From sequence record MZ475891.1: a stretch of DNA of 64,000 nucleotides, one strand, 5' to 3'. The translations under genes and the position numbers were made by a program. Position 1 is the stretch's first letter; the number at the start of each line of letters is the position of its first letter. Below the pieces are notes generated by a model. The model saw nothing but the letters and a program-made list of their open reading frames with translations, was not told the origin of the DNA and did not search any database. Below are positions 12,153-54,846 of the stretch, piece after piece.

Positions 12153-12413
12153 ATGTATCAATATGACCGCGATGAATTGAATGACCTGCCGCTTGACGTG
12201 CTGCATAGCGAAGCTGAAAAGCGTGGCTTGCTCGCTGACCTGGACGACGATGATGATTGTCCTGACCGTGCAGTGCTGGTGGGCATGATTATTGATGACC
12301 AGAACGAACGCAACGCCGAAGATGAAGAGGAAGGGCAGCGCCGTCAGATGCAAGACGAAGCTGACGATCATCGTCGCATGTTAGACGAACGCGACGGCTC
12401 AGACGACTGCTAA
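12153..12413 (+). CDS. small acidic protein with HeH/Rho-N-like motif (86 aa)
   Basis: GGAG RBS; LNDLPLDVLHSEAEKRGL...DRAVLVGMII. Confidence 0.75.
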   Translation: MYQYDRDELNDLPLDVLHSEAEKRGLLADLDDDDDCPDRAVLVGMIIDDQNERNAEDEEEGQRRQMQDEADDHRRMLDERDGSDDC

Positions 12414-12414
12414 C

Positions 12415-12753
12415 ATGCTATACTCTGGGCAGCAATACGATACACTCAGTCCTGACCAGTTGAATGAGTGTTTCAATCTGATTGAAAGTTGCATGGTGGC
12501 CTCTGGCTGTCGTGGCTTTCAAATAGTGTTATCACCATCTGGTCATGGCGATTGTCGTAGCGTCGTCCACATTCAGCACCCACAGTATGCAGGTCACATT
12601 GAGTTCCCCTCAGTTGACCGTGATACTTTTCGTGTGACTCTCGTCGCAACACGCGGTTGCTATGACAGCCGCACAGTGTTCGTACCAAATTCAGATACAG
12701 CCTATTCAGTGATAGGTCTGTATCTCTCAAACTTTATAGGGGCTACAAAATGA
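12415..12753 (+). CDS. hypothetical protein (112 aa)
   Basis: tight packing with neighbours. Confidence 0.7.
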   Translation: MLYSGQQYDTLSPDQLNECFNLIESCMVASGCRGFQIVLSPSGHGDCRSVVHIQHPQYAGHIEFPSVDRDTFRVTLVATRGCYDSRTVFVPNSDTAYSVIGLYLSNFIGATK

Positions 12754-13094
12754 AACGCCGCGTTATTCGTATCGATCAGTCAGAGTTCAACGGTGAAGCG
12801 CTTGTCTTCCCACCATCATTCAACATCACCGGCATTGACGTTGTGGTGCTTGTGACCGTGACGCACGAAGATTTCGGTGGCTTGAAGTTTCAAGATACCT
12901 ATCGTGTGAACGAACTACGTGTAAGCGAACATACAAATCCCCTGCGTCAGGAGATTGAGATCGTAGAGTACAGCAAACTGCCGAACGATGAAGCAATCTT
13001 CACACGACTACTCGACGTTGATTACTTCGACGACGACATTGCAGAGCGTGACCTGCGTCTGTACGATGCACCGACCACAATCGTCACTGCGTAA
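12750..13094 (+). CDS. hypothetical acidic protein (114 aa)
   Basis: ATGA overlap with the previous gene. Confidence 0.75.
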   Translation: MKRRVIRIDQSEFNGEALVFPPSFNITGIDVVVLVTVTHEDFGGLKFQDTYRVNELRVSEHTNPLRQEIEIVEYSKLPNDEAIFTRLLDVDYFDDDIAERDLRLYDAPTTIVTA

Positions 13095-13177
13095 TAATCT
13101 TTAGGGCTGCCATCTTGGTGGCCCTTTTTGTTTTCTGTAAACTACACGCACAATCCCAACAATGCGAGAACGCACAG

Positions 13178-13552
13178 ATGCCAAAGCGCCGCTTTTATTT
13201 GATGTTCTTTATCAGTCAGGCAGAACTCGACGCCAAGACTTTCTATCAACACAACATGCGCATCCTGACAACGATACGCCGCACACGCTGCATCTTTCTT
13301 GTGGTGCGAGAGACTGGTGAAGTCTATGTCCCAGGCAGCGCCGTGTATCAGTCTGCAATCGAAGAAGATCTAACGCAGATGGTCTTTGATGATCTGCACA
13401 AGGTCACCGAGTCTGTGAATGCCGTTGAGTCATTCGCTCAGGCTATCGCAGTAAACAAAAACGATAAGACAGTTCGCTACTGTGGTCGCAATCCAGAAGT
13501 GAGTGTCGTCTTCTTTGATCGCATGTTCACGAAAGTGGAGGTTCATCTATGA
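13178..13552 (+). CDS. hypothetical protein
   Basis: ORF overlapping the next gene by ATGA; start uncertain. Confidence 0.65.
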   Translation: MPKRRFYLMFFISQAELDAKTFYQHNMRILTTIRRTRCIFLVVRETGEVYVPGSAVYQSAIEEDLTQMVFDDLHKVTESVNAVESFAQAIAVNKNDKTVRYCGRNPEVSVVFFDRMFTKVEVHL

Positions 13553-13824
13553 GTTACGATCCACCAAAGCCAACTACGTCTCTTGGCGCTTCCCTTGCTT
13601 CACGTTGTGCGCACTCCACCCGAGAGAAAGCAAACAAGACGCGCAAGAAATACCCCGCGACAAAGACTGTGGTTGCTACACTGACCGCACCTATGCACGC
13701 CGCTGTGCAACGTCTGGCCAACAAACGCAATGTGTCTATTCAGCGTTGCTTAGTCAACATGCTCGAAACTGAGTTGGCGAAAGAGGGTATCACTTACGCT
13801 AAAGAACAGGACGAAGACGAATGA
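13549..13824 (+). CDS. ribbon-helix-helix-like DNA-binding protein
   Basis: GGAGG RBS; TVVATLTAPMHAAVQRLANKRNVSIQRCLVNML fits a strand-helix-helix pattern. Confidence 0.55.
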   Translation: MSYDPPKPTTSLGASLASRCAHSTREKANKTRKKYPATKTVVATLTAPMHAAVQRLANKRNVSIQRCLVNMLETELAKEGITYAKEQDEDE

Positions 13825-14456
13825 AACGTTTAGGTACAGTCATGGCGTTAGGTCTAAAAGACAAAGCGCCAAAGAATACTGACCTCGACATTACGCCTGT
13901 ATCGAAAGATGAAGAATGGGGCTCTTTGAGTCCCTTTCACTTAGGTCCGTGTCGAAGCGCAGATGGTATTATGTTCTACAACTTCGAAAACCTCTGGCAG
14001 TATAGCAAAGTCTACGAAGAACATTTGGAGAACACAAACCTCATCCTCTCAGGCGAGATAAGCGCTGATTGGTATCAGTGGCATCTTAAAGGTGCAAGAT
14101 CAAAACAGGCGCATCGCTATCCTATGGGAAAAGGCCAGAAGGCTTTATTCTCCAAATGGGGCGACTTGCGCCTTTCGTACATTCCCGCACGTAAACAGAT
14201 TTATGTTCCAGGCTACGCCGAGCTACTTCTGCCTCAAAAGAAATTCAAACAACTCCTCAAGCAATACAAGGCCGGCGCCAACATAATCGTCAGGGACTAC
14301 GACACCTACGATCTGCTGAAAGCCTATCCCAATTCTAATCGCATGTGGCTTGATGCTCTTAACAACCCAAACGCCAAGTTCGGTCACAGTTTCGTGATCG
14401 CTCTTGCTCTCATACTGCACGACAGGCCTCTATGGTACAATCAATGGGTGATATAA
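13821..14456 (+). CDS. NADAR-like protein (putative ADP-ribosyl hydrolase)
   Basis: LSPFHLGP...DGIMFYNFENLWQYSK resembles the NADAR LSNF...dG..f...E..yQ..K motif; also YIPARKQIY and GHSFVI. Confidence 0.5.
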   Translation: MKRLGTVMALGLKDKAPKNTDLDITPVSKDEEWGSLSPFHLGPCRSADGIMFYNFENLWQYSKVYEEHLENTNLILSGEISADWYQWHLKGARSKQAHRYPMGKGQKALFSKWGDLRLSYIPARKQIYVPGYAELLLPQKKFKQLLKQYKAGANIIVRDYDTYDLLKAYPNSNRMWLDALNNPNAKFGHSFVIALALILHDRPLWYNQWVI

Positions 14457-14755
14457 TCTACGAATGGGTCCACGACCTTGGAGGTAACGAAAGTCAGAAT
14501 CTGCCTATCTTGCCTCCAGACATTTATGCGTATGTGCGTGATTCCGTCACTGGCGCACGTACCCCAATCAACTTTGAAGGCCGCACCGAGTTACAGCGTC
14601 AAGACAAGAAAGTCATAGGCGTTGTCTACTGGTCTAATCGAGCTAATCTGATTTCATGGACGGGTGTAGAGCGCTTTCGTTTTACGCTGTATGTATTACG
14701 CGCCGCACGTAAGTCAAATGAACAACACGAGGAAGCTCAAGTCTGCACTAATTAG
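14432..14755 (+). CDS. hypothetical protein
   Basis: fills the gap up to the next promoter; start uncertain. Confidence 0.6.
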   Translation: MVQSMGDIIYEWVHDLGGNESQNLPILPPDIYAYVRDSVTGARTPINFEGRTELQRQDKKVIGVVYWSNRANLISWTGVERFRFTLYVLRAARKSNEQHEEAQVCTN

Positions 14756-14797
14756 GCTGAAATAGTCATCGCGCATAGTACGCTCCTGTGCTATACT
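14754..14797 (+). promoter_or_regulatory. phage promoter, upstream-box class
   Basis: AGGCTGAAAT at 14754; CCTGTGC-TATACT with the -10 at 14792 (38 nt offset). Confidence 0.65.
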
Positions 14798-14825
14798 TAT
14801 AGACGAAGCAACACATAATCTATTC

Positions 14826-14839
14826 ACGCTAAGGAGCGT
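14826..14839 (+). promoter_or_regulatory. SD-in-tetraloop RBS hairpin
   Basis: ACGCT-AAGG-AGCGT before the ATG at 14843. Confidence 0.6.
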
Positions 14840-14842
14840 ACT

Positions 14843-15274
14843 ATGACTATCAACAAGTTTGACTTTCAAACACTGACTACTCCAGAACAATGGTCTTCCG
14901 CTGCTTGGGGTTTCTATCGTGACTTCGCAGATCGTTTACGCGATGTTATCGGCCGCGATGATCTTTTCTTCGACATTGAAGTTGACGGTGGCAGCGATAG
15001 TGACCAAGTTGCCGAAGAGATGGTCGATGATGGTGTGATTCATTTACTCATCTCGTATAAAAACGAAGATGAAGATTTCATTAACGCCAAAGGCGTCTGG
15101 CTGTTCCAAGTCACTTACCCGACAGAAAGTGATATTGACGGTGAGTGGTCTAACCGCTTCGTGGTCGATGTGCAGACCGTTGATATGGAAATTTTAGAGC
15201 TGGTGGATTTTGATAACGGCCATCCACGTTTGCTTGAAGATATTGCAGCGCGTGTTAATCACTGGTTAGTGTAA
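14843..15274 (+). CDS. acidic hypothetical protein (143 aa)
   Basis: AAGGAG RBS, D/E-rich, first gene after a promoter. Confidence 0.8.
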   Translation: MTINKFDFQTLTTPEQWSSAAWGFYRDFADRLRDVIGRDDLFFDIEVDGGSDSDQVAEEMVDDGVIHLLISYKNEDEDFINAKGVWLFQVTYPTESDIDGEWSNRFVVDVQTVDMEILELVDFDNGHPRLLEDIAARVNHWLV

Positions 15275-15322
15275 TTGCTTGCGGGTCTTTTACGAAGGGC
15301 CCGTCGTCAACAACACAAACCC

Positions 15323-15336
15323 GTTCTGAGGAGAAC
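15323..15336 (+). promoter_or_regulatory. SD-in-tetraloop RBS hairpin
   Basis: GTTCT-GAGG-AGAAC before the ATG at 15340. Confidence 0.6.
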
Positions 15337-15339
15337 AAC

Positions 15340-15609
15340 ATGAGTAAATTTTCAGAAGCATCACCTGAAGTACAGAAAGCACTATTGGCGACTGCCATTA
15401 TCTCTGTAATGCCTGATGCATGTAAAGGCATGAGCATGAAAAAGAAGCAGCGCTACGCCGCTTTCGTTTTTGACCAGATTGGGATGACTGAAGAAGATCT
15501 AGGCAACCTAATCGACCAGAGCCTTAACCCTGCTGCTATTGAGGCTGCGGCTATTGTTGATGCCCAAGAAGCTGCTTTGCATACTTCTCAAAATAAATTT
15601 GACGCATAA
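15340..15609 (+). CDS. hypothetical protein (89 aa)
   Basis: GAGGAG RBS. Confidence 0.75.
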   Translation: MSKFSEASPEVQKALLATAIISVMPDACKGMSMKKKQRYAAFVFDQIGMTEEDLGNLIDQSLNPAAIEAAAIVDAQEAALHTSQNKFDA

Positions 15610-15619
15610 GGGGCTTAAC

Positions 15620-15937
15620 ATGTCATCATCTACTGAACTGCAATTCATCTTCCCAGAGTCAACCACTCTTATCGTTACTGTGGGCAACGGCATCGTCCCA
15701 GAGTATATGGGCATCCCTGCTAATCAAGAAACCCAGATGACGGGTGAGACTGCATTCAACTTTATGCAGAACTCTAACATCGTGGGCGTTATGAATCGTT
15801 TTGATCAGTCGCTCCTCAACCTGCTTATTGATCGCCATGAGCAGAACGAAGAAGATGAGAGTGCGCTGCGTCAAGCACACATGCAGAAACACACAAAGAA
15901 CTCTGGTGTGTATCTGATCATCAAACATCACCGCTAA
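15620..15937 (+). CDS. hypothetical protein (105 aa)
   Basis: ATG 10 nt after the previous stop, with AGGGG RBS. Confidence 0.7.
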   Translation: MSSSTELQFIFPESTTLIVTVGNGIVPEYMGIPANQETQMTGETAFNFMQNSNIVGVMNRFDQSLLNLLIDRHEQNEEDESALRQAHMQKHTKNSGVYLIIKHHR

Positions 15938-15983
15938 GATTTGTGAAGGGCATTCGTATGAGTGCTCTTTGAAAATCAACCCT

Positions 15984-15997
15984 GTTCTGAGGAGAAC
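15984..15997 (+). promoter_or_regulatory. SD-in-tetraloop RBS hairpin
   Basis: GTTCT-GAGG-AGAAC before the ATG at 16001; near-duplicate of 15318-15342. Confidence 0.6.
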
Positions 15998-16000
15998 AAT

Positions 16001-16411
16001 ATGAAACATGCACAACCCGGCTCTGTATACACCCTGCGTGAAATGCTGACTGAACTGAGTCTGCGCGACACGCCGAATCTTGGCTTCACTCCTGTTTCTG
16101 TGCGTTATCCAGAAACGAAGGAGATTCGCCAGCAGACGGTTCAGGATTCGCATCTGACCGAAGAAGAAATGCTCGCTCTTCCAGGCTGGGCAGAAACAAA
16201 GTGGCGCTACATTCGTGAAACCCACGAGTGGATCCCTGTGTTCGTCGCTGTTGGCAGTGCAGAGATTGAAGCGCTGTGTGTTATTGAACCCTACACGGAC
16301 CGCTACTTCCGTAATGAGGGTATCATGCACGTTTACCCTAAGGGCACTGAGCGCTCGCAGCATAAAGCGTATGACCCAGAAACGCACGGCACACTGGTTA
16401 AAGTGGCCTAA
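16001..16411 (+). CDS. hypothetical protein (136 aa)
   Basis: GAGGAG RBS. Confidence 0.75.
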   Translation: MKHAQPGSVYTLREMLTELSLRDTPNLGFTPVSVRYPETKEIRQQTVQDSHLTEEEMLALPGWAETKWRYIRETHEWIPVFVAVGSAEIEALCVIEPYTDRYFRNEGIMHVYPKGTERSQHKAYDPETHGTLVKVA

Positions 16412-16425
16412 GCACAAACTACCTC

Positions 16426-16449
16426 AAGCGGCTTACGGGCCGCTTTTCT
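16426..16449 (+). terminator. intrinsic terminator
   Basis: AAGCGGCT-TACG-GGCCGCTT followed by TTCTT. Confidence 0.75.
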
Positions 16450-28962: not shown

Positions 28963-30183
28963 ATGGCTATCATTTCCGCAGAAGAACAAGCGCGTCTGGA
29001 TTCACTTGCTGCTATCGTAGCTAAGATGTGGGATCAAGGCGGCCCTGCTGTGCGTGATGCTCTGCGCTACGTTGCTAACCAAATGCTGAGCGACGAGCAT
29101 TCATTCCTGTACGAAGAAGTGCCTGGTGTAACGCCTGACATTGAATCAGTCTACCACCACCTGAGCGATCTTCCACTGACGGGTATGACCCGCATCGTGC
29201 GCAATCCTGACTTGATCAGCTCGCTTGAAGATCTGATGAACAAAAATGAGCGTGAGATCTTCGGCTCTGCCGTGCGTAACAGCGCATACACTATGTTCAA
29301 ACTTTTACCGCAGAATGAAACCTCGGTGTTCTGCCATCCAGGTAAAGGTGCTACCTCTCGCACCCAGCCTCGTCAAGTCGCTGAAAGACTGCATCGTGGT
29401 TTAAGCTACATGTTGTCCGTGCACGGTCTGGACGCGTATATCAAAAAGGCTGACAATCAAATTCGCTCTTACGGGCATACTCGCCTAGCCTCTCTGGTAA
29501 TCGCAGTCGCAGTCAAAGGCGAACGCAGTGTTGCTACTCGCATCGTACCTCTGTGGTGTATGGACAATCACACCACAGAGGTGGGCACGATTGAACTTGA
29601 TCAGGATATCCCGAACGATAAGCCTTCAACCTCAGTTGAGGTAGAAACTGATATCCAAGTTTGGCCGAAGTTTGAAGCAAAACAACTTAGAGATATCCTG
29701 CTCAAGCATGGGAATTATATCGAGTCTAAGCTGCGCGGCATGGACCGCGAAGAATTAGATGATACCTATGAAGCCTTCGTTGATGCATACCTTAACAATA
29801 CTCACGACGAGGGTGATGAAGACGAAGATGATGAGTGGGACGAAGAAGAGGATGAAGACGAAGAAGATGCCTTCTGTCCTGAAATCCCTTCGCGCCTAGC
29901 TCTACCTGTCGAACTGCCTATTGTTAATCTCGAACGTCCGAAGTTAGACATTCGCCCAGGCATGCGTTTGAAGACCAAAAAGCCTAGACAGTCTCATATT
30001 CAGAATATTCTGATTGATCCAGTTTGGCACGCAGTTGACCCACAAGACGAGAACAATATTCATTATTTCAGTGTGTCTATTGTTGCCCGTGATACTGTCG
30101 GTCATAAGGCTATTTCAGCTTCGCCGCTTGAAGCACTGACTATCTCCAACGTGCTGATGCAGATCGCTGAAACTAACACTTAA
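28963..30183 (+). CDS. hypothetical protein with acidic tract (406 aa)
   Basis: long ORF; DEGDEDEDDEWDEEEDEDEED. Confidence 0.8.
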   Translation: MAIISAEEQARLDSLAAIVAKMWDQGGPAVRDALRYVANQMLSDEHSFLYEEVPGVTPDIESVYHHLSDLPLTGMTRIVRNPDLISSLEDLMNKNEREIFGSAVRNSAYTMFKLLPQNETSVFCHPGKGATSRTQPRQVAERLHRGLSYMLSVHGLDAYIKKADNQIRSYGHTRLASLVIAVAVKGERSVATRIVPLWCMDNHTTEVGTIELDQDIPNDKPSTSVEVETDIQVWPKFEAKQLRDILLKHGNYIESKLRGMDREELDDTYEAFVDAYLNNTHDEGDEDEDDEWDEEEDEDEEDAFCPEIPSRLALPVELPIVNLERPKLDIRPGMRLKTKKPRQSHIQNILIDPVWHAVDPQDENNIHYFSVSIVARDTVGHKAISASPLEALTISNVLMQIAETNT

Positions 30184-37536: not shown

Positions 37537-38928
37537 ATGATTTTCGATCTGCGCAAAAGTTTGGCCATGGTTCGTACCGTAATCGATGACCAAGTAATCT
37601 ATAACTTCTACAACATGATTGGCCGCGAGATGCAACTGTCTGGTACTACTCTCAAAGAGATTATCGACGTGCAGCGTAAGGGCGAACTGTGCACCAACAT
37701 CATGTGGGGTACTCAGAAGATGGAGTATCGCACACTCAGATTCGATGAGCGTGGTGATCTTCTCTTAGACGTGACCGTTGGTCCGCATTGCTACGCACGG
37801 CTCTCTTACGATCAGATTGAACATTACGGGCGCAAAGAGTTTAAGATTATTAACTGCATTGAGATTGATGGCTACCTAGCCCGTGATATTAAAGCGCATC
37901 TTCGCGCAGTGGGTCAGACTGAGCCTAAGCTCGAATGGTACGACAACGTGTCGGATGATGAACTGAAGGACGCTCTACTTTCAGTTGGCCACATGGGACC
38001 TCTGGCTTATGAAGGTAAATCTCGTAACCAGTTAGAGGACATGTTTGAGAAATTCCAGCGCAAGCACGATGGTGAATACAAATATACGCACTCGGCTATT
38101 GGCTTAGACCCAAATGAAAAGCTGCCTGCTGATTTGTATGAAGATGAGGCATGCTCAATCACTCGTCGTTCGTTTGCTCCTCAGAAGACTGTCGATATGA
38201 TGATCACTGAGATCTCAAACGTGATGCGCATGTTCGATATCTGGGACTCAGCGCCAACCTCTGAGACGCATGAGTGGTCAATGCAGGAAGCATACATGGC
38301 CTTCTATAATAGCTTAGTGATTGATAGCGATGGCAGCCGTCTGCGTGAACTGAAAGATAACCCACAGTTCGCTATCAACTTCATCTACGGTATGGCGGCT
38401 GACCTGAACTGGATTCACATCAACGAGATGACCGAAGACTATCGTGGCTCGGTTGTGAATCGCATCCTTCAGGAGATTGCTGTTGAGATCAGCACCTCTG
38501 ATGATTACTGCACGACGGAGCACGGCATTGCTCTTATTCAGAAAGAAACAGAAGAAACAGAAGAAGAGGAGGATGCTTCTGAGCCAGTCTCCATCGAAAA
38601 GAAAAAGAAGAAAGGCTTCCCGGATATTCGTTCAGTAGAAGAGGTGAACTATGACGCACTGCATATCATCGAGATTACATACAAACTGCCTAAGCAGCCT
38701 AAGCTGCGCACTAAGCTAGACGTACTGCAATCTCGTGAGTGCTATCTTGAGCACTTCTTCGGTTGTTTGAAAGAAAATGATTGGCATAGATTAGACAATA
38801 TCACTAATCTTGATCTGCGCCGTATTGTTGGTGCTATTACTAAATCTAATGGTGGTAGATTCAGCCACAACGCCCTGTTAAACATAATTAAACGTGCAGC
38901 TAAGAAACTGGCTGCCACTGAGTTCTAA
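37537..38928 (+). CDS. hypothetical protein (463 aa) with possible HeH-like motif
   Basis: AGGAG RBS; NVSDDELKDALLSVG...KSRNQLEDMF. Confidence 0.8.
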   Translation: MIFDLRKSLAMVRTVIDDQVIYNFYNMIGREMQLSGTTLKEIIDVQRKGELCTNIMWGTQKMEYRTLRFDERGDLLLDVTVGPHCYARLSYDQIEHYGRKEFKIINCIEIDGYLARDIKAHLRAVGQTEPKLEWYDNVSDDELKDALLSVGHMGPLAYEGKSRNQLEDMFEKFQRKHDGEYKYTHSAIGLDPNEKLPADLYEDEACSITRRSFAPQKTVDMMITEISNVMRMFDIWDSAPTSETHEWSMQEAYMAFYNSLVIDSDGSRLRELKDNPQFAINFIYGMAADLNWIHINEMTEDYRGSVVNRILQEIAVEISTSDDYCTTEHGIALIQKETEETEEEEDASEPVSIEKKKKKGFPDIRSVEEVNYDALHIIEITYKLPKQPKLRTKLDVLQSRECYLEHFFGCLKENDWHRLDNITNLDLRRIVGAITKSNGGRFSHNALLNIIKRAAKKLAATEF

Positions 38929-40443: not shown

Positions 40444-40881
40444 ATGAAATTTGATCAAGCCCCAACGAAAGCACAGCTCGTACTGCTGGCACTCGCTCTC
40501 GAATCCGTTCTCCTCTCTATGGAGAAAACGTTTATCAACCGTAACCTGCTGGAGCAGTTACTTGCGAAGTACGGCATCTCGTTTAACGACCTGAAAGAGT
40601 TGCGCGAGTACGGTGAAAAGCATTCCGCCATCGGCACCAGCGTTGCTCAAGTTATGGAGATAGCTGCATTGAATGTGGCTCATCTGAAAACAGAGCCGAA
40701 GCCTGAATACAGTCAAGACGACCTTGATCTAATTCGCGTAGAATACGAGCCAATCGATACGTCTGTCCTGCGTCAGGGCGCTGTGAATGATGGTGTTATC
40801 ACAGTGCAGCAAGCAGCCACTTTTGAGCGTGATCAGATACTGACTGCTATTCTTGAGTACCGACTGCGCTCAGAAGCATAA
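40444..40881 (+). CDS. hypothetical protein (145 aa)
   Basis: GAGG RBS. Confidence 0.7.
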   Translation: MKFDQAPTKAQLVLLALALESVLLSMEKTFINRNLLEQLLAKYGISFNDLKELREYGEKHSAIGTSVAQVMEIAALNVAHLKTEPKPEYSQDDLDLIRVEYEPIDTSVLRQGAVNDGVITVQQAATFERDQILTAILEYRLRSEA

Positions 40882-40928: not shown

Positions 40929-40985
40929 AGAGATGTAGCGTAGACGTGAGGTATGCGCTATAAATTGAATGACGCGTTTTTGCTT

Positions 40986-41078
40986 GACTGTAAGGTAGCG
41001 GTATCTTACAGTCCTTTTTCAAGTGGCTTCGAAGTTTGAGGCTTCTTGCGAAAGGGTTCGATACCCTTTAAGCGCTTT
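40986..41078 (+). ncRNA. structured leader RNA (copy 1) with a tRNA T-loop-like hairpin
   Basis: 12-bp hairpin GACTGTAAGGTA/TATCTTACAGTC, then CTTTTT, a AAGTG...CGCTT stem and AAAGGG-TTCGATA-CCCTTT. Confidence 0.4.
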
Positions 41079-41136: not shown

Positions 41137-41958
41137 ATGCCAGAAGCACGCAAACCTCGCCCAGCTGATCGTTTCGCTAAAGCCCGTGCAGAGAAAAACT
41201 CACCGGAGCGTCAAGATGCGGCAGCCCAGCGCACGTATAAAGACACTCCGCCTAAATCTGTTCAGGTGAAACTTGATGCTGTGGCAGCTTCTAAGAAGAA
41301 AGTTTCACGCGGCCCCAAGGCATCTCGTCCGCGTCAGTCGCCTGTTGTTGACGCAGCACCAAAGCCTCGCATTCGTGATGAGGAACGTGTGTACAATCTC
41401 GTACACATGATTCTCTCTGCGTGGAAAGCCGATGCAGAAAACGCGGCGGTAAGTGTGGGAATCATTAAAGTGTCTCGCCGTAAGATCGAGGGTGCGTTAC
41501 GCGATCTCAAGAATACGCGCTTCACTAAAATCCCAGGCTTAATCAATGACGTGCTTGTCTACAATGAACTGGTAGCTGAGTTCGGACAGTGGGTGTACGT
41601 CGAGCACGACAGTCCTGATTGGATTTTTGTGCGCCTGCCTGAAAACAGCACGCCTGTGATTCGCGCTGACATTAGTTACGCCAAGACGGGTGAAACTTCC
41701 ACGTCTGTTTCGACTTCTAGTGAAGTTCTGCTGAAAGATCTTAGCGAAGACGAAGAAGATGAGATCCCCGATAATGTCGAGTACGACGATGCGGACGAGA
41801 CTGACGAAGACGAAGCTGAGCCGTATGACTACAGCGCTTGGTCGCTGAGTGACCTGCAGGCTTATGCAAAGCGTTATGACTTCCTGCAGCCCGACACTGA
41901 GGGGTTCGATGATCGCGAGAAGTTGATAGCAGCCATCGAGCTGGGGGAACAGCACTAA
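41137..41958 (+). CDS. hypothetical protein: basic N-terminus, acidic linker, C-terminal HeH-like motif (273 aa)
   Basis: AAGGA RBS; SAWSLSDLQAYAKRY...DREKLIAAIE. Confidence 0.8.
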   Translation: MPEARKPRPADRFAKARAEKNSPERQDAAAQRTYKDTPPKSVQVKLDAVAASKKKVSRGPKASRPRQSPVVDAAPKPRIRDEERVYNLVHMILSAWKADAENAAVSVGIIKVSRRKIEGALRDLKNTRFTKIPGLINDVLVYNELVAEFGQWVYVEHDSPDWIFVRLPENSTPVIRADISYAKTGETSTSVSTSSEVLLKDLSEDEEDEIPDNVEYDDADETDEDEAEPYDYSAWSLSDLQAYAKRYDFLQPDTEGFDDREKLIAAIELGEQH

Positions 41959-42245: not shown

Positions 42246-43838
<1,593 letters not shown>

Positions 43839-47317: not shown

Positions 47318-50300
47318 ATGTCCGAGAACAATCAAAGCGGAGCTACTCGCTTCGGCACAGAAGTGCAGGCCGGCATCGCAGAAGCGCAACGCCGTGCTAA
47401 CTCTGCTGAGAGTGGCAGGCTGAACAAATGCACGATCATCGTGCTGACTTCGATTGACGCCAACCAGCGTTACTCTTATCTGTCCGCAGACGAACAACTG
47501 CGCGAAGAACTGGTGCGCGGTAAAGTAATCAACCGTCTGCCTGACCTGTTAGAGCGTGCTGGTGGTAATACCGCTGCTGACAATAACAGCGCGTTCCACG
47601 TCCTGCACCCAAACAACGGCGTGCCTACCTCGATCGATGCTCGCATCAAAGTGGGCGAAGGTAATGCGGTCATTCTGTCATATACTGTAAACAAAGCAGT
47701 GACAGAGATGCACGGTAGCTTATCGCTTGCTCTGTTTGCATCTGGCGCCGAAGACTTAAATGATCTGGCCGCTGATTTCGGTATTCACGCAATTGCGATT
47801 GTTGAAGAATCGAAAGCCGCTGAGTTCATCAAAGGACTTGAAGCTCAGGTGGAAGCGTTGAATATTGTAAATCTCACTAGCATTGATGATTCTAACGATT
47901 CGTTAGACCTGCCAGTGATTGACTTCGCTGCATTAGCGGGCAATCCTACAACAGTGCTTACGGGCGCTGTGCGTACCTTCATCATGCAATCAATCAGCGG
48001 CGAAGTCTTCGCTGCAATCCCTAATAACGGAGAACTGAACGTGAAAAACGATAACGTGGCTCAGCCTGCTGACCTGGAAGAAGACTTCGACAACAATGAT
48101 GAGATTGTTGATCAGAACGGCGGTGAAGGCGAAGTTACTGGCGAAGAGCTGCTGGGCTACAAAGCAGAAAATCTTTCGCTCGACCAAATGCGTAGTGCGC
48201 TTGAAGCGATCAACTACGACCTGTCTGAAATGACGGAAGAAGCAATCCGTGAAGCGTTCGAAACTGAACAGAACCTTTACCTGGGTGGCGGCGATGACGA
48301 ATCTTCCGAAGAAGAGGAAGATGAAGACGCCGCTGATGTTGACAGCGACGAAGAAGAAGAGGAAGAAGACGAGGAGTTCGATGCTCCTGCGTATCTGGCT
48401 CAAGCGCTCGCTGCTGAAAACTTTAGCCGTAGCGATCTGAAACTGCTGGTCAAGTCTCAAGACCTGAAAGTGATGAAGAACGACACTCCTGAAACTCTGG
48501 TGCAGAAGCTGCTGGACCTGGTGCAGGACGCATCGTCCGATGAAGTGTTCGAACTGATCACTGTGTTCGTTGAACTGCTGGACGAGCACGGCGTTGAATG
48601 TGACGCGCTGCGTGCTACCATCGCTGAGGACGAAAGCGATGAAGACGAAGAAGAGGACGGCGAAGACGAAGACGCCGATGAAGATGGCGACGACGAAGAA
48701 GAGGAAGATGAAGAGGAGTCTGATGAAGACGAATCTGAAACCGAATCTGATGACGAAACCGAAACGCTGTCTGTGGCTGACGTTACCGATCCTCTCGATT
48801 ACTTCCGCTTCAACGGTGGTGACCTGACTGCCGAGCAGCGTATTGCTGCTGTCGAATCGATGGGTACAAGCACTGTTGGTCTGAACATTGTTCAGGTCAT
48901 GAAAGCGTTCAACGAAATCCGCTCACAGTCTAACCTGATCGATATTGCCGCTGATGAAGCCGACTCTGCGCTGTACGATATGCTGACTGCTCTGCCGTAC
49001 GCAACGCTGCTGAGCTTCGCTCAAGAGATTGAGCTGGAAGTTGATGGCGAAGAGTCTGCCGAAGATCTCGTCACTCTGCTGATGGACGAATCTACTGCCG
49101 ACAGCGATACGCTGAAAGCGCTGGCGTATGTGTTCGAAACCTACGGTGGCCTGGGTGTTGAAGCAGATGATATCCTGCTGATGGACTGGCATGAAGCGCT
49201 GGCGCTGGTTATTCCTGTGTATGCATCGTCAGACGAAGTTGAGTCCGATGCAGAAGACGAAGACGAAGACGTTATCGCCGATGAAGATTCGTCTAACGCT
49301 AACCTGAAGTTCCTGAAATCTGTTGACGTCAACAACCCTGTCGGCCCGATGCTCGAAGTTGATATGGACCGCACTCTGGTTATCAACTACACCTTCACTG
49401 ACGGTAACACTTACCGCGATGTGCAAGATGAGCTGGCTGATATCGGTGGCGTTAACTACCGCTTCCCGTTCAATCTGGGCAAAGCAGGTAAAGCAAACAA
49501 GAGCAGTGCGCCTGGTAGCCTGATTGCTCCTGCTGAACATCTGATCGCAATGTTAGACCGCGCCGGTACTACTCGCTTCTTAGCTGACCCGAACACCTTC
49601 GATGTTGGTGTGTGGGCAGAATCTCTGGAGCGTATGCTGAACGCAGAAATCGCTAACAACCTGTATGCTGGTCGCATTGAAGACGGCGCTGACCCGCAGC
49701 AAGCTGGCATCGTAGTCGGTGACTTCATCGATGAAGACGAGCAAGCAGAAGTTGCTGACCTCGGTCTGCTGGATGAAGATGAGCTGGAAGCGTACACTGG
49801 TGACCATCTGCCGATTGCAAGCCTGTACAATGCGCAAGCCCGCGTTCGTCCAGTCAACGTCGATAGCTCTTACGTTGCACTGAGCACTGTAGTGCTGAAC
49901 GTTGCAGTCCCTGGCTTCTGGTGTGACTCTGATGTTGGTCGTCTGGTGCAAGCGTGTGTTAATCGCGTAATCAGCCTGGCGGAAAGCGTTGAAGGCATCA
50001 AAGTGTATGCAGGCTTCACTCTGGAATCTGCTGCGCTGCTGAACAACGGTCGCCTGTACGAAGTTGTTGGTGCGCTGCGTGAGATGGACGGTGTGCAGTC
50101 TTACTCTGCCGCTGACGCTGCTAACTTCTCAGAAGCGGAAGACATTATCGAAGTAGCGTCTTCTATCGATGATCGTGACCTGCCGTTCACTGTACTGGCA
50201 AGCGGCCTGTCTGGCGCAACGTTTGAAAACGGCGGTGACCTGACCGTGCTGGTTCCGTGCTCTGTCTTCGACGAAGAGGAAGATGAGTCCGAAGAGGACG

Positions 50301-50323
50301 AGTCAGAAGAAGACGAAGAGTAA
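47318..50323 (+). CDS. very large acidic protein with repeated HeH-like modules (1001 aa)
   Basis: several D/E tracts separating helical modules (ENLSLDQMRSAL, ENFSRSDLKLLV, ALPYATLLSFAQ). Confidence 0.85.
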   Translation: MSENNQSGATRFGTEVQAGIAEAQRRANSAESGRLNKCTIIVLTSIDANQRYSYLSADEQLREELVRGKVINRLPDLLERAGGNTAADNNSAFHVLHPNNGVPTSIDARIKVGEGNAVILSYTVNKAVTEMHGSLSLALFASGAEDLNDLAADFGIHAIAIVEESKAAEFIKGLEAQVEALNIVNLTSIDDSNDSLDLPVIDFAALAGNPTTVLTGAVRTFIMQSISGEVFAAIPNNGELNVKNDNVAQPADLEEDFDNNDEIVDQNGGEGEVTGEELLGYKAENLSLDQMRSALEAINYDLSEMTEEAIREAFETEQNLYLGGGDDESSEEEEDEDAADVDSDEEEEEEDEEFDAPAYLAQALAAENFSRSDLKLLVKSQDLKVMKNDTPETLVQKLLDLVQDASSDEVFELITVFVELLDEHGVECDALRATIAEDESDEDEEEDGEDEDADEDGDDEEEEDEEESDEDESETESDDETETLSVADVTDPLDYFRFNGGDLTAEQRIAAVESMGTSTVGLNIVQVMKAFNEIRSQSNLIDIAADEADSALYDMLTALPYATLLSFAQEIELEVDGEESAEDLVTLLMDESTADSDTLKALAYVFETYGGLGVEADDILLMDWHEALALVIPVYASSDEVESDAEDEDEDVIADEDSSNANLKFLKSVDVNNPVGPMLEVDMDRTLVINYTFTDGNTYRDVQDELADIGGVNYRFPFNLGKAGKANKSSAPGSLIAPAEHLIAMLDRAGTTRFLADPNTFDVGVWAESLERMLNAEIANNLYAGRIEDGADPQQAGIVVGDFIDEDEQAEVADLGLLDEDELEAYTGDHLPIASLYNAQARVRPVNVDSSYVALSTVVLNVAVPGFWCDSDVGRLVQACVNRVISLAESVEGIKVYAGFTLESAALLNNGRLYEVVGALREMDGVQSYSAADAANFSEAEDIIEVASSIDDRDLPFTVLASGLSGATFENGGDLTVLVPCSVFDEEEDESEEDESEEDEE

Positions 50324-50374: not shown

Positions 50375-51196
50375 ATGTCAGAACAAGTTGACCACGCAAC
50401 TAACATCATTAAGATGGTTAGTGACCGTGATGCAAAGATTAGCGAGCTGTCCGTTACGGCAAACGAGCTGCAAGGTCAGGTGAATGACTATGCTGCCGAA
50501 CTCGCCGCATCTGCTGTGCGTGAAACTGCATTGCGTTTGAAGCTACGTTCTCAAGAGCGCCAGACGAATACTGATTTAGTTCGTCTGGAAACTCGCACGA
50601 AAGAGCTGGTGGATATTTCAAACACTCAGATGGCCGAAAGCAACGAGCTTAAAGCACGCGTTGAAGAAATGAACGCTAAGCTGGCGCAAGTTGACCCGAT
50701 GCCGTTCGTGCTGCATCTGGTTGCTGTGCAAGCTGCATCTGTGTTCTCGTACATGGTGCAGTCGTTTGCTCATGCTCATGTTAACCAGCGTACCAACGAT
50801 ACCACACGCACACTCAGTGCTCTGATGGTAGGCGAAACAGCGCGGCGTTATCAGTCTTTCGAAAAGACCATCGCTCGTTACTGCAACTCGATTGGCGCTG
50901 AACGTCCGAAAGCAAATGATGTGCGTAACGCTTTCCCTGACTTCATGCGTAATGAAGCTGATTTATTCTGTAAAGACCCGAAGTACAGTCACGATTGCAT
51001 GGCATTAGCTGCTATGCTTAATCTGCCTCGTACATCGTGGATGTATCGAAAGTCTCTGGACGCCGTAAACCACTTCGCGTGGATTGCAGCTTTCGAAGGC
51101 AGTCCTCAAGAGTTTGAGTCAGAATCAGATTACAACGAATTATACGTTAACTCGCTTATCGATATTGCAAGCGCGTTAATCGGGCAAAACTTTTAA
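50375..51196 (+). CDS. hypothetical protein with N-terminal coiled coil (273 aa)
   Basis: AGGA RBS, heptad-like N-terminal half. Confidence 0.8.
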   Translation: MSEQVDHATNIIKMVSDRDAKISELSVTANELQGQVNDYAAELAASAVRETALRLKLRSQERQTNTDLVRLETRTKELVDISNTQMAESNELKARVEEMNAKLAQVDPMPFVLHLVAVQAASVFSYMVQSFAHAHVNQRTNDTTRTLSALMVGETARRYQSFEKTIARYCNSIGAERPKANDVRNAFPDFMRNEADLFCKDPKYSHDCMALAAMLNLPRTSWMYRKSLDAVNHFAWIAAFEGSPQEFESESDYNELYVNSLIDIASALIGQNF

Positions 51197-51241
51197 TCTG
51201 TAAAACTTCCCTGTGATTTATTCTGTAAACACTAATTGAAG
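51195..51241 (+). promoter_or_regulatory. tandem TCTGTAAA boxes, candidate phage-specific promoter
   Basis: AATCTGTAAAA at 51195 and TCTGTAAACACTAATTGAAG at 51222. Confidence 0.5.
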
Positions 51242-51291
51242 TTCGCAACGGGCAAAAGCCCAAATCGAAAAATTAACGGAGTTCCACTACA

Positions 51292-51861
51292 ATGGCAAAA
51301 GCTACTAAGTCAACTAACCTGGTTCCTACCCTGGTTTCTCGCATCGCTAAAAAGTCTGGCTCTATCGGTACTTCGAAAGCAAAAGCAACTGACCTGCCGC
51401 ATGACATTCTGATCGAATCTCAGCACGTTGTCGAAATCATCGGTTATATCACTGACCGTTCTGCGAACCACGTTACTCTGCGTCACAAAAAAGGACACGG
51501 TTCTTCTTCTCAGATCGTTTCAACCTTCGGCCCTGGTCAACTGCTGACCGTTCTGGGTGAAGCTGGTTCACACGGTTCTGTGCGTGCGCTGATTACTGCT
51601 CCGGTCTGCGAACTGAAAGGCTTCACCATTAAGTATGACGGCGATACCATCATCGCTACTTCTATCGAAACTGGCGAAGTGATTCACGTTAACACCCAGC
51701 TGGCCGGTCACACCGTTCGCGCTACTGTGAACGAAACTGCCGCCGCTAAGAAATACGGCACGCCTGCTCCAGGCAAAGGCAAGAAAGATGCTAAGCCTGC
51801 TAAAGCAGACAAAGCAGCGAAAGGCGGTAAGAAAAAGAAAGGTAGCGACGAAGACTTTTAA
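51292..51861 (+). CDS. beta-rich protein with Lys/Ala-rich tail (189 aa)
   Basis: GGAG RBS; tail PAKADKAAKGGKKKKGSDEDF. Confidence 0.85.
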   Translation: MAKATKSTNLVPTLVSRIAKKSGSIGTSKAKATDLPHDILIESQHVVEIIGYITDRSANHVTLRHKKGHGSSSQIVSTFGPGQLLTVLGEAGSHGSVRALITAPVCELKGFTIKYDGDTIIATSIETGEVIHVNTQLAGHTVRATVNETAAAKKYGTPAPGKGKKDAKPAKADKAAKGGKKKKGSDEDF

Positions 51862-51874
51862 TCGCTGACCTGAA

Positions 51875-51954
51875 AATCTGTAAAAACTGATTATGCAGAG
51901 CAACAAAAATAAAGTTGCTCTGCCGTTAAACGAATCTGTAAACATTAATTGAAG
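51875..51954 (+). promoter_or_regulatory. tandem TCTGTAAA boxes, candidate phage-specific promoter
   Basis: AATCTGTAAAA at 51875 and TCTGTAAACATTAATTGAAG at 51935. Confidence 0.5.
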
Positions 51955-51990
51955 CAAGTCGCTTCTCATCCCATACAGGAAATAAAAACC

Positions 51991-52785
51991 ATGGCTAAAT
52001 CTGCTAAAGTAACCGTAACCGTCGCACAGAAAGTTCTGGCTCAGATGCTGGGTGTTGTTGTAGCGAACGCAAGCGAGAAAGAACTCGTTGCGATTCTGTC
52101 TGACCTGGGCCTGACTGTTGCTGCGAAAGGTAAAGGTGCTAAAGCTGAGAAAGCTGCGAAGGGCGGCAAGAAAGCTAAAGCCGCTACCGTTGCTCAGATC
52201 GTTAAGGCCGTTGAAGAAGAGGAAGCTATCTCCCTCGACGGCGTGAGTGAAGATGACCTGCGTGCAGCGGTCGTCAAAGCTAAGCTGGCTAAGGCCAACA
52301 AAGCTAAAGCGCTGGACGAAGAGGAGTTGACTGAACTCCTGACCGACGCAATGGGTGCCGAGTCTGATGAAGACGAGGAAGAGGACGAAGAAGAAGAGGA
52401 CGAAGACGAGGACGAAGACGACTCGGACGACGAAGACGAAGATGAAGACGACGAGGACTCAGATGATGAAGATGAGGACGAAGACGACGAAGATTCGGAC
52501 GACGAAGACGAGGACGAAGATGATGAGGAGGAAGACGAAGACGAGGATGAAGATGAGGACGAAGATGAAGATCTCGACCTTGACGGCCTCGACGAAGACG
52601 AACTCCGCGCCCTCGTGATCGACAACAAGCTGGCCACTAAGGCCAAAGCTAAAAAGATGGACGAAGACGAACTTCGTGAACTGTGTGAATCCCACTTCGG
52701 CGGCGACGATGAAGACGAAGACGAAGATGAGGACGAAGACGATGAAGACTTCGACGACGAAGACGAAGACGAAGACGACGAATAA
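51991..52785 (+). CDS. protein with two HeH-like modules separated by a ~70-residue D/E tract (264 aa)
   Basis: AGGA RBS; LDGVSEDDLRAAV... and LDGLDEDELRALV... repeats. Confidence 0.85.
   Translation: MAKSAKVTVTVAQKVLAQMLGVVVANASEKELVAILSDLGLTVAAKGKGAKAEKAAKGGKKAKAATVAQIVKAVEEEEAISLDGVSEDDLRAAVVKAKLAKANKAKALDEEELTELLTDAMGAESDEDEEEDEEEEDEDEDEDDSDDEDEDEDDEDSDDEDEDEDDEDSDDEDEDEDDEEEDEDEDEDEDEDEDLDLDGLDEDELRALVIDNKLATKAKAKKMDEDELRELCESHFGGDDEDEDEDEDEDDEDFDDEDEDEDDE
52360..52580 (+). repeat. coding low-complexity D/E tract with three DSDDEDEDEDDE units
   Basis: 36-nt units differing at synonymous positions. Confidence 0.8.
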
Positions 52786-52800
52786 GTCCTGATCTGCCGC

Positions 52801-52835
52801 TGCCCTGCAAGACTAATGAGTGTCTGCGCAGGGCA
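52801..52835 (+). terminator. hairpin after the acidic gene
   Basis: TGCCCTGC...GCAGGGCA. Confidence 0.5.
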
Positions 52836-52998
52836 AGAAATATTCGAAAAATAGTTCGAATTATTTCGCAAAAAGTTTGAAAAATTCCTGTCGTTGTTTA
52901 TTGCACATAGTAATATTCGACTACAGGAATTAAACCTGAAAAATTTTACTTTTATCCAACGCGACGAGTCGCACAAAATAAATTCACGGAGTTATGCC

Positions 52999-53511
52999 AT
53001 GACTAAGAAAATCATTTCCGGCCTGAACAAAAACCTGAAAGCTATCGCTAAATCAGAAGCTGCCCTGGCCAAAACTGTTGCTGCTACCAACAAAGAGATC
53101 GAAAACCTGGGTTCACAGCGTGCTGGTATCGAAGCGCAGATCGCTGAACTGTCTGGCGTTGCTGCTCCTGCCAAAGCTGATAAAAAAGCTAAAGGCGCGA
53201 AAGCTGAAAAAGCGGCCAAGCCTGCTAAAGCTGAAAAAGCAGCTAAAGCCGGTAAGAAAGAAAAAGCTGCAAAAGCTGAAAAGCCAGCCAAAGCTGATAA
53301 AAAAGCTAAAGGCGCCAAAGCTGAAAAAGCTGCTAAGCCTGCTAAAGCTGAAAAAGCTGGCAAGAAAGAAAAAGCTGCTACCAAGCCTGCTAAAGCTGAT
53401 AAAAAAGCGAAAGGCGCCAAGGCCGACAAAGCTGCTAAAGGCGGTAAAGCTGACAAAGCCGGTAAGAAAAAGAAAGCGCAGTCTGATGACTTCGAATTCG
53501 AAATGGAATAA
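52999..53511 (+). CDS. histone H1-like Lys/Ala repeat protein with N-terminal coiled coil (170 aa)
   Basis: GGAG RBS; three PAKADKKAKGAKA(E/D)KAAK repeats; ends DDFEFEME. Confidence 0.85.
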   Translation: MTKKIISGLNKNLKAIAKSEAALAKTVAATNKEIENLGSQRAGIEAQIAELSGVAAPAKADKKAKGAKAEKAAKPAKAEKAAKAGKKEKAAKAEKPAKADKKAKGAKAEKAAKPAKAEKAGKKEKAATKPAKADKKAKGAKADKAAKGGKADKAGKKKKAQSDDFEFEME

Positions 53512-53543
53512 GCAAGCGGTCGCATAGCGCGATAACTTGATCG

Positions 53544-53575
53544 AGAGGGCAGCGCTGACGGGCGTTTGCCCTCTT
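53544..53575 (+). terminator. putative terminator
   Basis: AGAGGGCAG-CGCT-GACG-GGCG-TTTGCCCTCT. Confidence 0.6.
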
Positions 53576-53609
53576 GTCGTATCTAACTCATTTTCGAGGC
53601 TCTTTAAAA

Positions 53610-54095
53610 ATGTCCAAACAAGAAGTATTCAACCGTCTTGATGACCTTCATGCAAAAGAGCGTGAGCGTATCAAACAAGCCAAGCAAGGCCCCTCCTATT
53701 TCGAACTGACGAACCTGCGTATTGAAGCAGCCGCTCGTCTCGCTCGTGCCCTACAAACTCTCAAAGCCGCAAACGTTGTTGGTAACGTTGAAGGTGTCTC
53801 TCTGCAGGAAGATGCGCTTGAAGTCGCTCAAGCCTACTGGTCTGCTATCTTAGAAGGCTTAACCCCTGTAGTAGTTGAAGGCTCGCCTATGCGCAAGCTG
53901 CTTGATGGTATGCCTGCATGTATCGAAGCGTTCCGTGTTATCGTAATGGAAAGCGCTATGCGTGAACGTCTAGTCGTTCAATGCAATGCGATTGCAGATG
54001 ACATTAAGGGTTTCCCGCAACTGACTGGTCATGTTCTGCCTACTATTCAACACACCTGCGAAGAGGGATGCAACTGTGGCTCAATCACTAAGTGA
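53610..54095 (+). CDS. hypothetical protein (161 aa)
   Basis: GAGG RBS. Confidence 0.75.
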   Translation: MSKQEVFNRLDDLHAKERERIKQAKQGPSYFELTNLRIEAAARLARALQTLKAANVVGNVEGVSLQEDALEVAQAYWSAILEGLTPVVVEGSPMRKLLDGMPACIEAFRVIVMESAMRERLVVQCNAIADDIKGFPQLTGHVLPTIQHTCEEGCNCGSITK

Positions 54096-54846
54096 GAAGA
54101 TTAACCGTTACTTCAATCTGATGGAGGACATCCGTGCTGAGATGTTCCGCGTGATTGATGTATCTGACCGTTACTTCGGTATCGTTAGTTTCAACACTAA
54201 CATGCAGGCACTGCAAACCACACTGGTGAGCAAATCCACCCTGATGGAAGTTAAGCTGCTTGAGGGTATCACTGGTGCGGAGCTGATTGCGTTTGGCAAT
54301 ATGGTTCACACTGTAGAGCAATGGGTTGCTGGTGGCATGAAAGGCGCTTTCCCTATCGAGCAGACCAAAGACGTGTATGCCAAATATCGCGCTGCTACCT
54401 CAGATGAACCACAGGCACAAAGTGAACCTAAGCCTGCTAATACCCCGCAGCCTGATGCTGATGAGTTAGACAGCCAGGAACTGGACAATATCAAAGTTCA
54501 ACTTCTGTCCTTCGATGACTCTGAACTGATCGACCATGCCGCTCAGTTTAAACTTGGGACGCGTACACGCCTGCGCAGAATGGGCCGAGATGATTTGTTG
54601 GACATGTTGTTTGATCATCATGGTATCTACGCAGAAAACGACCAGCGCCGCAATGAAAGTGTTGCAGACTGGTTAGAGCGTATACCTCTTGATGATGCTC
54701 TCCGCGAAGTCGACCGCATAGATGATAGCAGTGTACTCGATCACGTTGCGGACGCTATGAGCGTTATGTCGGGTGTCAATGACGCTGTGACGCGAGCGCG
54801 TATTAAGCAGGCTCTGAAAGAGCTACACACTAAGCCCGCGCAGTAA
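54076..54846 (+). CDS. hypothetical protein with HeH-like motif
   Basis: GTG start with GAGGG RBS (start uncertain); LLSFDDSELIDHAAQFKL...MGRDDLLDML. Confidence 0.75.
   Translation: MAQSLSEKINRYFNLMEDIRAEMFRVIDVSDRYFGIVSFNTNMQALQTTLVSKSTLMEVKLLEGITGAELIAFGNMVHTVEQWVAGGMKGAFPIEQTKDVYAKYRAATSDEPQAQSEPKPANTPQPDADELDSQELDNIKVQLLSFDDSELIDHAAQFKLGTRTRLRRMGRDDLLDMLFDHHGIYAENDQRRNESVADWLERIPLDDALREVDRIDDSSVLDHVADAMSVMSGVNDAVTRARIKQALKELHTKPAQ

Follow-up and report, generated by a model that had tools for sequence, protein, structure and literature searches.

The last 64 kb of the genome of Erwinia phage pEa_SNUABM_13 (MZ475891.1, 264,714 bp) include a small module of the helix-extension-helix (HeH) type that, as judged by profile comparisons, is reused as seven copies in six proteins. 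This DNA, referred to here as the window, is a stretch of 64,000 nucleotides identical in sequence to that part of the record; a window position equals the MZ475891.1 position minus 200714, all features for which coordinates are given below are located on the plus strand, and genes and their products are named by the window position at which the gene starts. We refer to the module represented by these seven copies as the core module. An earlier note on this DNA had proposed that one module is present in at least seven proteins, in which it listed ten segments (12153, 37537, 41137, 42246, 47318a, 47318b, 47318c, 51991a, 51991b and 54076). The peptides that it quoted were all found in the genes it named, and the reuse of a module is real for the six proteins; the claim of one module in seven proteins was overstated, five of the ten listed segments being unproven. 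Two of the seven copies (40444 and 28963) were absent from its list. We regard the core modules as a lineage-specific HeH family and tentatively propose that they act as weak tethers to DNA, or to a partner bound to DNA, a reading to which we assign slightly less than an even chance.

For the searches that defined the core, the alignments were extended with orthologues from eight related phages. Jackhmmer searches seeded with 42246, 51991a, 51991b or 54076 converged on one set consisting of 42246:491-530, 51991:80-122, 51991:195-237 and 54076:141-183, with E values of 1e-12 to 1e-23. The other three copies were identified by hhalign comparison with the core, for which a null distribution was generated from 1215 windows of 45 amino acids taken from the rest of the window proteome (top probability 10.9%, none at 20% or above). 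For the 37537 segment, aligned in register, the probability was 47.8% when a single sequence was used and 88.6% with a profile; the C-terminus of 40444 reached 73.8% (E 2.9e-5, 41 columns in register), and residues 232-275 of 28963 reached 50.9% as a single sequence (E 1.6e-4, in register). Significant similarity is therefore found among 42246, 51991a, 51991b, 54076 and 37537 plus the two previously unlisted segments in 40444 and 28963, and it does not extend to 12153, 41137, 47318a, 47318b or 47318c. A scan of the whole genome with the core hidden Markov model (HMM) and with a broader HMM revealed no copies in the other 200 kb.

The ten segments of the earlier note align plausibly by eye, and the literal pattern that it quoted is weak: nine of its 12 fixed positions are reached by 42246 only, and at least seven of the 12 are reached by seven windows, where 1.75 were expected and a maximum of 5 was seen in 200 local shuffles. 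An HMM built from the ten segments recognizes its own members, as it must by construction, but when each protein in turn was excluded from the HMM some alone were recovered, namely 42246 (15.6 bits), 51991 (12.3 and 10.1 bits) and, marginally, 37537, with decoys at 7-11 bits; the HMMs built in this way failed to recover 12153, 41137, 47318 and 54076. Locally shuffled and reversed decoys scored below the core segments. These decoys, together with the empirical hhalign null, rule out for the core that the similarity is a composition artefact of acidic proteins.

The best supported copies are located in three proteins. In the 530-amino acid product of 42246 (42246-43838), which matches phrog_33433, a family of unknown function, the module forms the C-terminus (residues 491-530; 43716..43835; jackhmmer E 6.6e-19) and is kept in all eight related phages examined. 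The 264-amino acid product of 51991 (51991-52785) consists of 47% Asp plus Glu, matches phrog_30618, also of unknown function, and carries two copies that are present in all eight relatives: copy a at residues 80-122 (52228..52356; jackhmmer E ~1e-18) and copy b at residues 195-237 (52573..52701), the one used for structural modelling. The 256-amino acid product of 54076 (54076-54846), a gene that adjoins the topoisomerase II genes directly upstream, includes an internal copy at residues 141-183 (54496..54624; jackhmmer E 2e-13 to 8e-21). With its annotated GTG start, this gene shares 20 bases with the end of the 53610-54095 gene, and an in-frame ATG at 54031 would add 15 residues to the protein, so that its true start is uncertain.

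The remaining copies are related to the core at the profile level. The 463-amino acid product of 37537 (37537-38928) has a divergent module at residues 134-174 (37936..38058), recognized by hhalign, that shows an E value of 0.12 against the Pfam family Ish1. A core-related module forms the C-terminus of the 145-amino acid product of 40444 (40444-40881; residues 98-143; 40735..40872), detected by hhalign and by the core HMM in a six-frame scan (E 0.038). The copy in the 406-amino acid product of 28963 (28963-30183; residues 232-275; 29656..29787) is probably core-related according to hhalign, the core HMM giving only E 3.2, and is followed by a poly-acidic tract. The highest scores against the core in the null set came from two half-motifs, LGLLDEDELEAY in 47318 (residues ~805-828; window 49730-49800) and ASEKELVAILSDLGLTVAAKGKG in 51991 (residues ~24-47; window 52060-52130); both look like a first helix followed by 'GL', a second helix not being recognizable, and they may be decayed or partial copies.

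The layout of the core module, about 40 residues in length, consists of a short N-terminal turn, a helix 1 with the consensus 's-E-D-E-L-R..V', a Lys/Arg-rich linker ('L-x-T-x-K-K-A-K-K-M') and a helix 2 ('D-E-D-E-L-R-E-L-L'). In both helices the 'E-L-R' is conserved, as are the hydrophobic positions. Lys and Arg account for 40-89% of the residues in linker columns 27-32, four of these six columns being free of acidic residues. Poly-acidic flanks had been described as usual for the module; the core modules indeed nearly always adjoin poly-Asp/Glu tracts, the exception being 37537, which has no acidic flanking tracts. At the DNA level the poly-acidic linkers are encoded by imperfect GAAGAC- or GAA-type tandem repeats (window 43200-43263, 48629-48753, 52369-52571 and 52705-52782), a structure that should be prone to changes in length by slippage.

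The model generated with AlphaFold2 (AF2) for 51991b has a predicted local distance difference test score (pLDDT) of 83.6 and shows helices at model residues 12-21, 27-32 (a short turn) and 35-46; the alignment supplied to AF2 was built from the window and related loci of other genomes, and some of its module sequences are possibly identical between phages. Exhaustive comparison of this model with 48,161 PDB chains using VIA-align placed SAP, LEM, Rho-N or T4 endonuclease VII C-terminal domains at 18 or more of the top 50 positions, the HeH-type matches spanning 39-47 residues with a root mean square deviation (rmsd) of 2.0-4.6 Å and Z-scores of 3.3-5.7. The SAP neighbours are 1zrj (E1B-AP5, Z 5.7), 7bu5_B (SLX4, Z 5.2), 1v66 (Z 4.5), 2do1, 2kw9, 1h1j, 1jjr and 2rno, with PIAS1, Hcc-1, MKL1, Tho1, Ku70, SIZ1, SF3B2 and FAN1 among the proteins represented and MANF and CDNF as SAP-like neighbours. 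Residues 1-46 of Rho (1a62) were matched over 45 residues with a Z of 4.9, and the LEM domains of emerin and LAP2 (7ndy_G, 1h9f and 2odc) with Z-scores of 3.4-4.1. The Foldseek lists, in which all E values exceed 1, contain a SAP-containing exonuclease, Rho, Ku and hnRNP-U, and Rho_N clusters are among the matches of a shape search in the ESM Atlas. Closest in shape in the Atlas, ahead of bacterial Rho, are hypothetical proteins of giant viruses (Nucleocytoviricota), with TM-scores by query of 0.73-0.79 and an rmsd of 1.4-2.2 Å over 45 residues.

The earlier attribution of an HeH fold thus stands for the core at the level of the predicted structure, which falls into the HeH fold class by AF2 and VIA-align, and it does not carry over to family assignments, the Pfam gathering scores being missed. 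The 42246 copy reached 19.2 bits (E 9.5e-4), the best score obtained, against SAP (PF02037; gathering score 23.9) and 14.5 bits (E 0.027) against LEM (PF03020; gathering score 24). When 35 core copies were examined, sub-threshold matches at E ≤1 were obtained for five of them with SAP (best E 1.3e-3) and for six with LEM (best E 0.0031), and no match at E ≤1 to Rho_N (PF07498) was found for these copies or the ten listed segments, none of which reached its gathering score. The modelling therefore supports an HeH fold for the core, which by the Pfam definitions belongs to none of the families SAP, LEM and Rho_N.

SAP is a eukaryotic DNA-binding helix-extended loop-helix domain found in SAF-A, Ku70, PIAS, Tho1, FAN1 and SLX4. 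The core resembles it in having SAP domains as its best structural neighbours, in the 'E-L-R' of helix 1 and in the basic residues of the loop. It differs in its net negative charge, in a longer linker, for which a helical turn is predicted at model residues 27-32, and in that the loop glycine of canonical SAP domains (PMC9399289) is not conserved. LEM and the HeH/LEM-like domains of inner nuclear membrane proteins share the two-helix arrangement of the core, whose carriers lack a membrane anchor. We know of no BAF-like partner in bacteria or phages. Rho_N, the N-terminal helical sub-domain of the terminator Rho, is similar to the core in size (~45 residues), in its short first helix and main helix ending in 'G-L', in a linker of about nine residues with Met and basic residues, and in a second helix of the type 'x-x-L-[IR]-x-[LI]-L'. 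Rho_N is also found as a stand-alone module in many phage proteins. In contrast to it, the core has strongly acidic helices, occurs as tandem copies with poly-acidic spacers and lacks an adjacent cold-shock-like RNA-binding domain.

Comparison of orthologues shows at the sequence level that the module has been gained, lost and swapped at given sites and that it has been duplicated and moved between genes. Orthologues of 37537 include a second, typical core copy (~residues 350-490) that is missing in pEa_SNUABM_13. At the site of the 41137 C-terminus, the orthologues of Alexandra, SNUABM_3, L016, L017 and L024 carry a core-like module, those of Yoloswag and JA11 the same Ish1-like variant as pEa_SNUABM_13, and those of SNUABM_17, AD1 and SNUABM_5 neither of the two. 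The 54076 orthologues of Alexandra, Yoloswag, SNUABM_5 and JA11 are shorter and lack the module, and at the 28963 site the orthologues carry an unrelated Cys-rich stretch instead of the module. Accessory copies at the same site share 22-36% identity. SNUABM_17 has an extra copy that is closer to the 51991b type (62% identity) than to the copies found at the same site in other phages (only 34%), which points to replacement or conversion.

A tblastn search with one module found no genomes beyond a set of 57 related phages. Among 1.84 billion cluster representatives, only 36 proteins matched the profile at E ≤1e-3; apart from the orthologues, the matches are metagenomic proteins of unrelated phages in which 2-4 copies stand in tandem with acidic linkers between them. 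The gene for one of them, P0005 (four copies), follows those for DNA polymerase A (PolA), a PDDEXK nuclease and an AAA_24 ATPase; that for P0032 (two copies) is located between AAA_24 and an MCM helicase, and that for P0018 between polymerase A and RecA. The N-terminus of P0032 has a weak match to a single-stranded DNA-binding protein (SSB) family in PHROGs (phrog_7778, E 4e-4), and no match was obtained when the N-terminal domains of P0004, P0005 and P0032 were compared with PDB sequences.

Five listed segments fall outside the core. In single-sequence hhalign comparisons with it, 41137 reached 4.6%, 47318a 14.7% (out of register), and 47318b and 47318c less than 1%; 12153 reached 1-3.7%. A value of 46% obtained for 41137 was discarded because it had been inflated by the core-like Alexandra and SNUABM_3 rows of the alignment. 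Four of these segments, those of 41137 and 12153 and segments 47318a and 47318c, appear to have the same general shape as the core and carry acidic linkers, and relatedness to it is not demonstrable. For 12153, 47318a-c and possibly 41137, the resemblance could be convergent or due to chance, as amphipathic helix-loop-helix stretches are common in acidic helical proteins, and the segments would then belong to other folds; this explanation, which agrees with the failure of both the leave-one-out HMMs and hhalign to link these segments to the core, is a serious possibility that we nevertheless hold to be somewhat short of probable, and the evidence differs from segment to segment.

One observation against chance concerns the C-terminus of the 273-amino acid product of 41137 (41137-41958; residues 232-271; 41830..41949). 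As an isolated segment it scores 25.7 bits (E 1.5e-5) with Ish1 (PF10281), and 20.7 bits within the whole protein, narrowly missing the gathering score of 26.6 bits; its 'Y-S-A-W-S-L-S-D-L-Q-A-Y-A-K' matches Ish1 model positions 1-33 of 37, and its orthologues, as described above, can carry a core-like module at the same site. In Pfam, Ish1 is placed in the clan that also contains SAP and LEM. The 41137 segment differs from Ish1 in being a single copy in a phage protein, and its similarity to the core is undetectable. The candidate HeH-like pattern with an acidic linker in the 86-amino acid product of 12153 (12153-12413; residues 7-50; 12171..12302) is conserved in three orthologues; a search for homologous proteins with the 12153 protein found none, and no Pfam match was obtained for it or for 47318a-c. 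Its nearest neighbours in language-model comparisons are mostly SAP and Rho_N (scores 0.65-0.76, to be taken as leads only). For 12153, the 41137 C-terminus and 47318a, SAP, Rho_N and HeH clusters account for roughly two thirds of those language-model neighbours that have a name, which speaks against chance, but the scores of 0.65-0.81 are below 0.9 and thus leads only.

In the 1,001-amino acid product of 47318 (47318-50323), an AF2 model of residues 268-652 has a mean pLDDT of 66.5, with folded parts at 80-87. Segment a (residues 281-318; 48158..48271) is predicted as a 10-residue helix (288-297), a nine-residue loop and a second helix (307-321) in a block with pLDDT 80-86, and segment c (residues 556-592; 48983..49093) as a helix-loop-helix (helices at 561-570 and 581-589, block pLDDT 80-87) within a domain of four to five helices (~545-640) that matches the SAP-containing region of FAN1 with Z-scores of 6.3-6.7 and the SAP domains of SIZ1 and PIAS1 with a Z of 4.9 (VIA-align). 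Both predictions argue against a purely fortuitous resemblance. Segment b (residues 364-402; 48407..48523), on the other hand, corresponds to the second and third helices of a bundle some 95 residues long and is no free-standing HeH, as would be expected if its likeness to the pattern were accidental. This bundle (residues 352-447; window 48371-48658) has five helices in the AF2 model, and its best VIA-align matches are the six-helix domains of the death fold (pyrin, DED, DD and CARD; Z 5-6.9). A death fold in a phage protein would be unexpected, and for a helical bundle these Z-scores are too weak to trust.

With regard to function, each core module would be a weak, independently folding tether whose conserved basic inter-helix loop contacts DNA or, alternatively, a partner that is bound to DNA and offers an acidic surface. 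Avidity would come from the presence of several copies with acidic linkers between them, and very acidic phage proteins would in this way be kept at DNA undergoing replication or recombination. The residues with which SAP domains contact DNA are found mainly in the inter-helix loop, and a single domain binds with low affinity (PMC9399289), which is the reason for reading the core modules as weak tethers. If the core binds DNA or RNA in the manner of these domains, the contacts would lie in the inter-helix loop and at the beginning of helix 2. The reading is further supported by the location of the module block just upstream of the topoisomerase II genes and by that of the metagenomic carriers near replication and recombination genes.

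Several observations weigh against this reading. All core modules have a net negative charge (−2 to −5) and stand beside long poly-acidic tracts that should repel DNA. Pfam gathering scores are missed by all of the 10 listed segments and 35 core copies, the core alignment retrieved no HeH protein in a sequence-profile search of PDB (the best matches were Nudix and E2p at E ≥0.01), and Foldseek searches of PDB and of the Swiss-Prot part of the AlphaFold database gave nothing with E <1. All Z-scores for the core module are below 6; they are low because the module has only 45 residues, and the structural argument therefore rests on enrichment. The N-terminal domains of the carrier proteins have no functional match in Pfam or PHROGs, and the time at which the module genes would be expressed is deduced from gene position alone. 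Finally, several of the closest structural neighbours are HeH domains that bind proteins, as in SLX4-MUS81, emerin LEM-BAF, MANF-BiP and PIAS1-p53.

This last point leads to the docking idea of the earlier note, here taken as a protein-docking code. The modules would bind one common protein hub, which could be a basic protein of the phage, a part of the replisome or a nucleoid protein of the host, and so gather their carriers at one place. Docking of this kind, the main rival of the tether, is, on balance, unlikely, although we rate it and the DNA tether as not far apart. Many of the best neighbours are protein-binding HeH domains (7bu5_B, 7ndy_G, 6h9u_B and 1v66), the net acidic character of the modules favours docking, and the Lys/Ala-rich basic proteins 52999 and 51292 are encoded between module genes. 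SSB tails act as recruitment hubs, and P0005 and P0032, whose modules stand behind an N-terminal domain, are encoded just after AAA_24, where SSB-like proteins with such tails could be expected; the assignment to SSB derives from the weak phrog_7778 match of P0032 and from general knowledge of SSB tails. The rapid divergence of the accessory copies at a given site is unexpected for one fixed interface. In addition, 12153, 47318a and 47318c have acidic linkers and a net charge of −8 to −10, so that their linker charge is opposite to that of the core, and a single ligand or scaffold for all the listed segments is therefore unlikely.

Acidic tails are found in several proteins of DNA metabolism: E. 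coli SSB, T4 gp32 and T7 gp2.5 have acidic C-terminal tails, and DEK combines a SAP domain with an acidic tract. The module proteins are similar to these in carrying disordered acidic tracts, and so are P0005 and P0032, which have 2-4 modules behind an N-terminal domain and are encoded beside AAA_24/Sak4 recombinase genes. They differ in that the tails include folded mini-domains, and a possible SSB nature of the N-terminal domains is suggested by the weak phrog_7778 match.

A third explanation, which we consider improbable, is that the modules bind no ligand and are stable folds that interrupt poly-acidic disorder for the sake of solubility, protease resistance or spacing, the acidic tracts being the functional part, for instance as DNA mimics or as chaperones of basic proteins. 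The position of the modules almost always next to poly-Asp/Glu tracts, the slippage-prone GAAGAC-type repeats that encode these tracts and the toleration of module gain and loss among orthologues are all compatible with it. For a mere spacer, however, the conservation of the linker Lys/Arg residues across paralogues and distant metagenomic phages is unexpected, and the retention of the 42246 and 51991 copies in all eight relatives examined also argues against it. Least probable of all, and to our mind a rather remote idea, is a multivalent network in which the basic loops act as stickers and the acidic tracts as spacers, with 42246, 51991, 54076, 37537, 40444 and 28963 and the Lys/Ala-rich proteins condensing on phage DNA; if true, it would amount to a chromatin-like coat or a membrane-less replication compartment, and the nearest shapes in giant viruses would point to a solution shared among large DNA viruses. 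We know of no protein-shelled nucleus in this lineage of jumbo phages.

The window includes about 96 genes, all on the plus strand and all labelled 'hypothetical protein' in the record. Their order is common to related jumbo phages such as Alexandra, AD1, Y3, Yoloswag, JA11 and many pEa_SNUABM isolates. In related phages the genes just downstream of the module block are labelled as topoisomerase II subunits, an identification that PHROGs confirmed for window 54987-57014 and 57749-59410; the other neighbouring genes matched only families of unknown function in PHROGs and Pfam. In the genome as a whole, plus-strand genes extend from ~186 kb through the end of the record to ~46 kb, and the minus-strand block in between carries structural genes, e.g. 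that of the tail sheath. To judge from gene position alone, the window belongs to the non-structural (early/middle) arm. A search of the literature turned up neither a description of the module nor a virion proteome or transcriptome from this group of phages.

The composition of the block deserves mention. In addition to its C-terminal HeH module, which is immediately preceded by 'DDDFEFDD', the 42246 product contains a Lys/Ala/Pro-rich, histone-H1-like basic tract (residues ~80-130; window 42480-42640) and a poly-Glu/Asp tract of 40 residues. The two basic proteins encoded between the acidic module genes are those of 52999-53511 and 51292-51861. The first of them consists of 29% Lys/Arg, with Lys/Ala-rich repeats that are tandem also in the DNA (53200-53477), and ends in 'DDFEFEME'; the second has a Lys-rich tail with the end 'SDEDF'. 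Both ends are acidic-aromatic and in this resemble SSB tails at their tips. The only tRNA gene of the window, for tRNA-Glu (anticodon UUC; window 40981-41075), is located just upstream of the acid-rich gene block and has a length of 95 nt, which is unusually long for a tRNA-Glu. In the four most acidic genes Glu codons make up 14% of the total, compared to 6.5% in the rest, and the share of GAA among Glu codons is 73%, compared to 57%.

HeH modules of phage proteins are already present in databases, for example in SAP and Rho_N clusters of Uroviricota. The core is a narrow new sequence variant of this kind, with an unusual acidic-spacer architecture and visible shuffling, and so far it is no new kind of system. 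The family is missed by Pfam thresholds. Its recognition as a portable module of the SAP/Rho-N type gives a first handle on at least six 'hypothetical' genes and on a conserved block beside the topoisomerase genes that is common to Alexandra-, Y3-, Yoloswag- and JA11-like jumbo phages. It also poses a testable question, namely whether the target to which these mini-domains recruit very acidic phage proteins is DNA or a partner shared by them.

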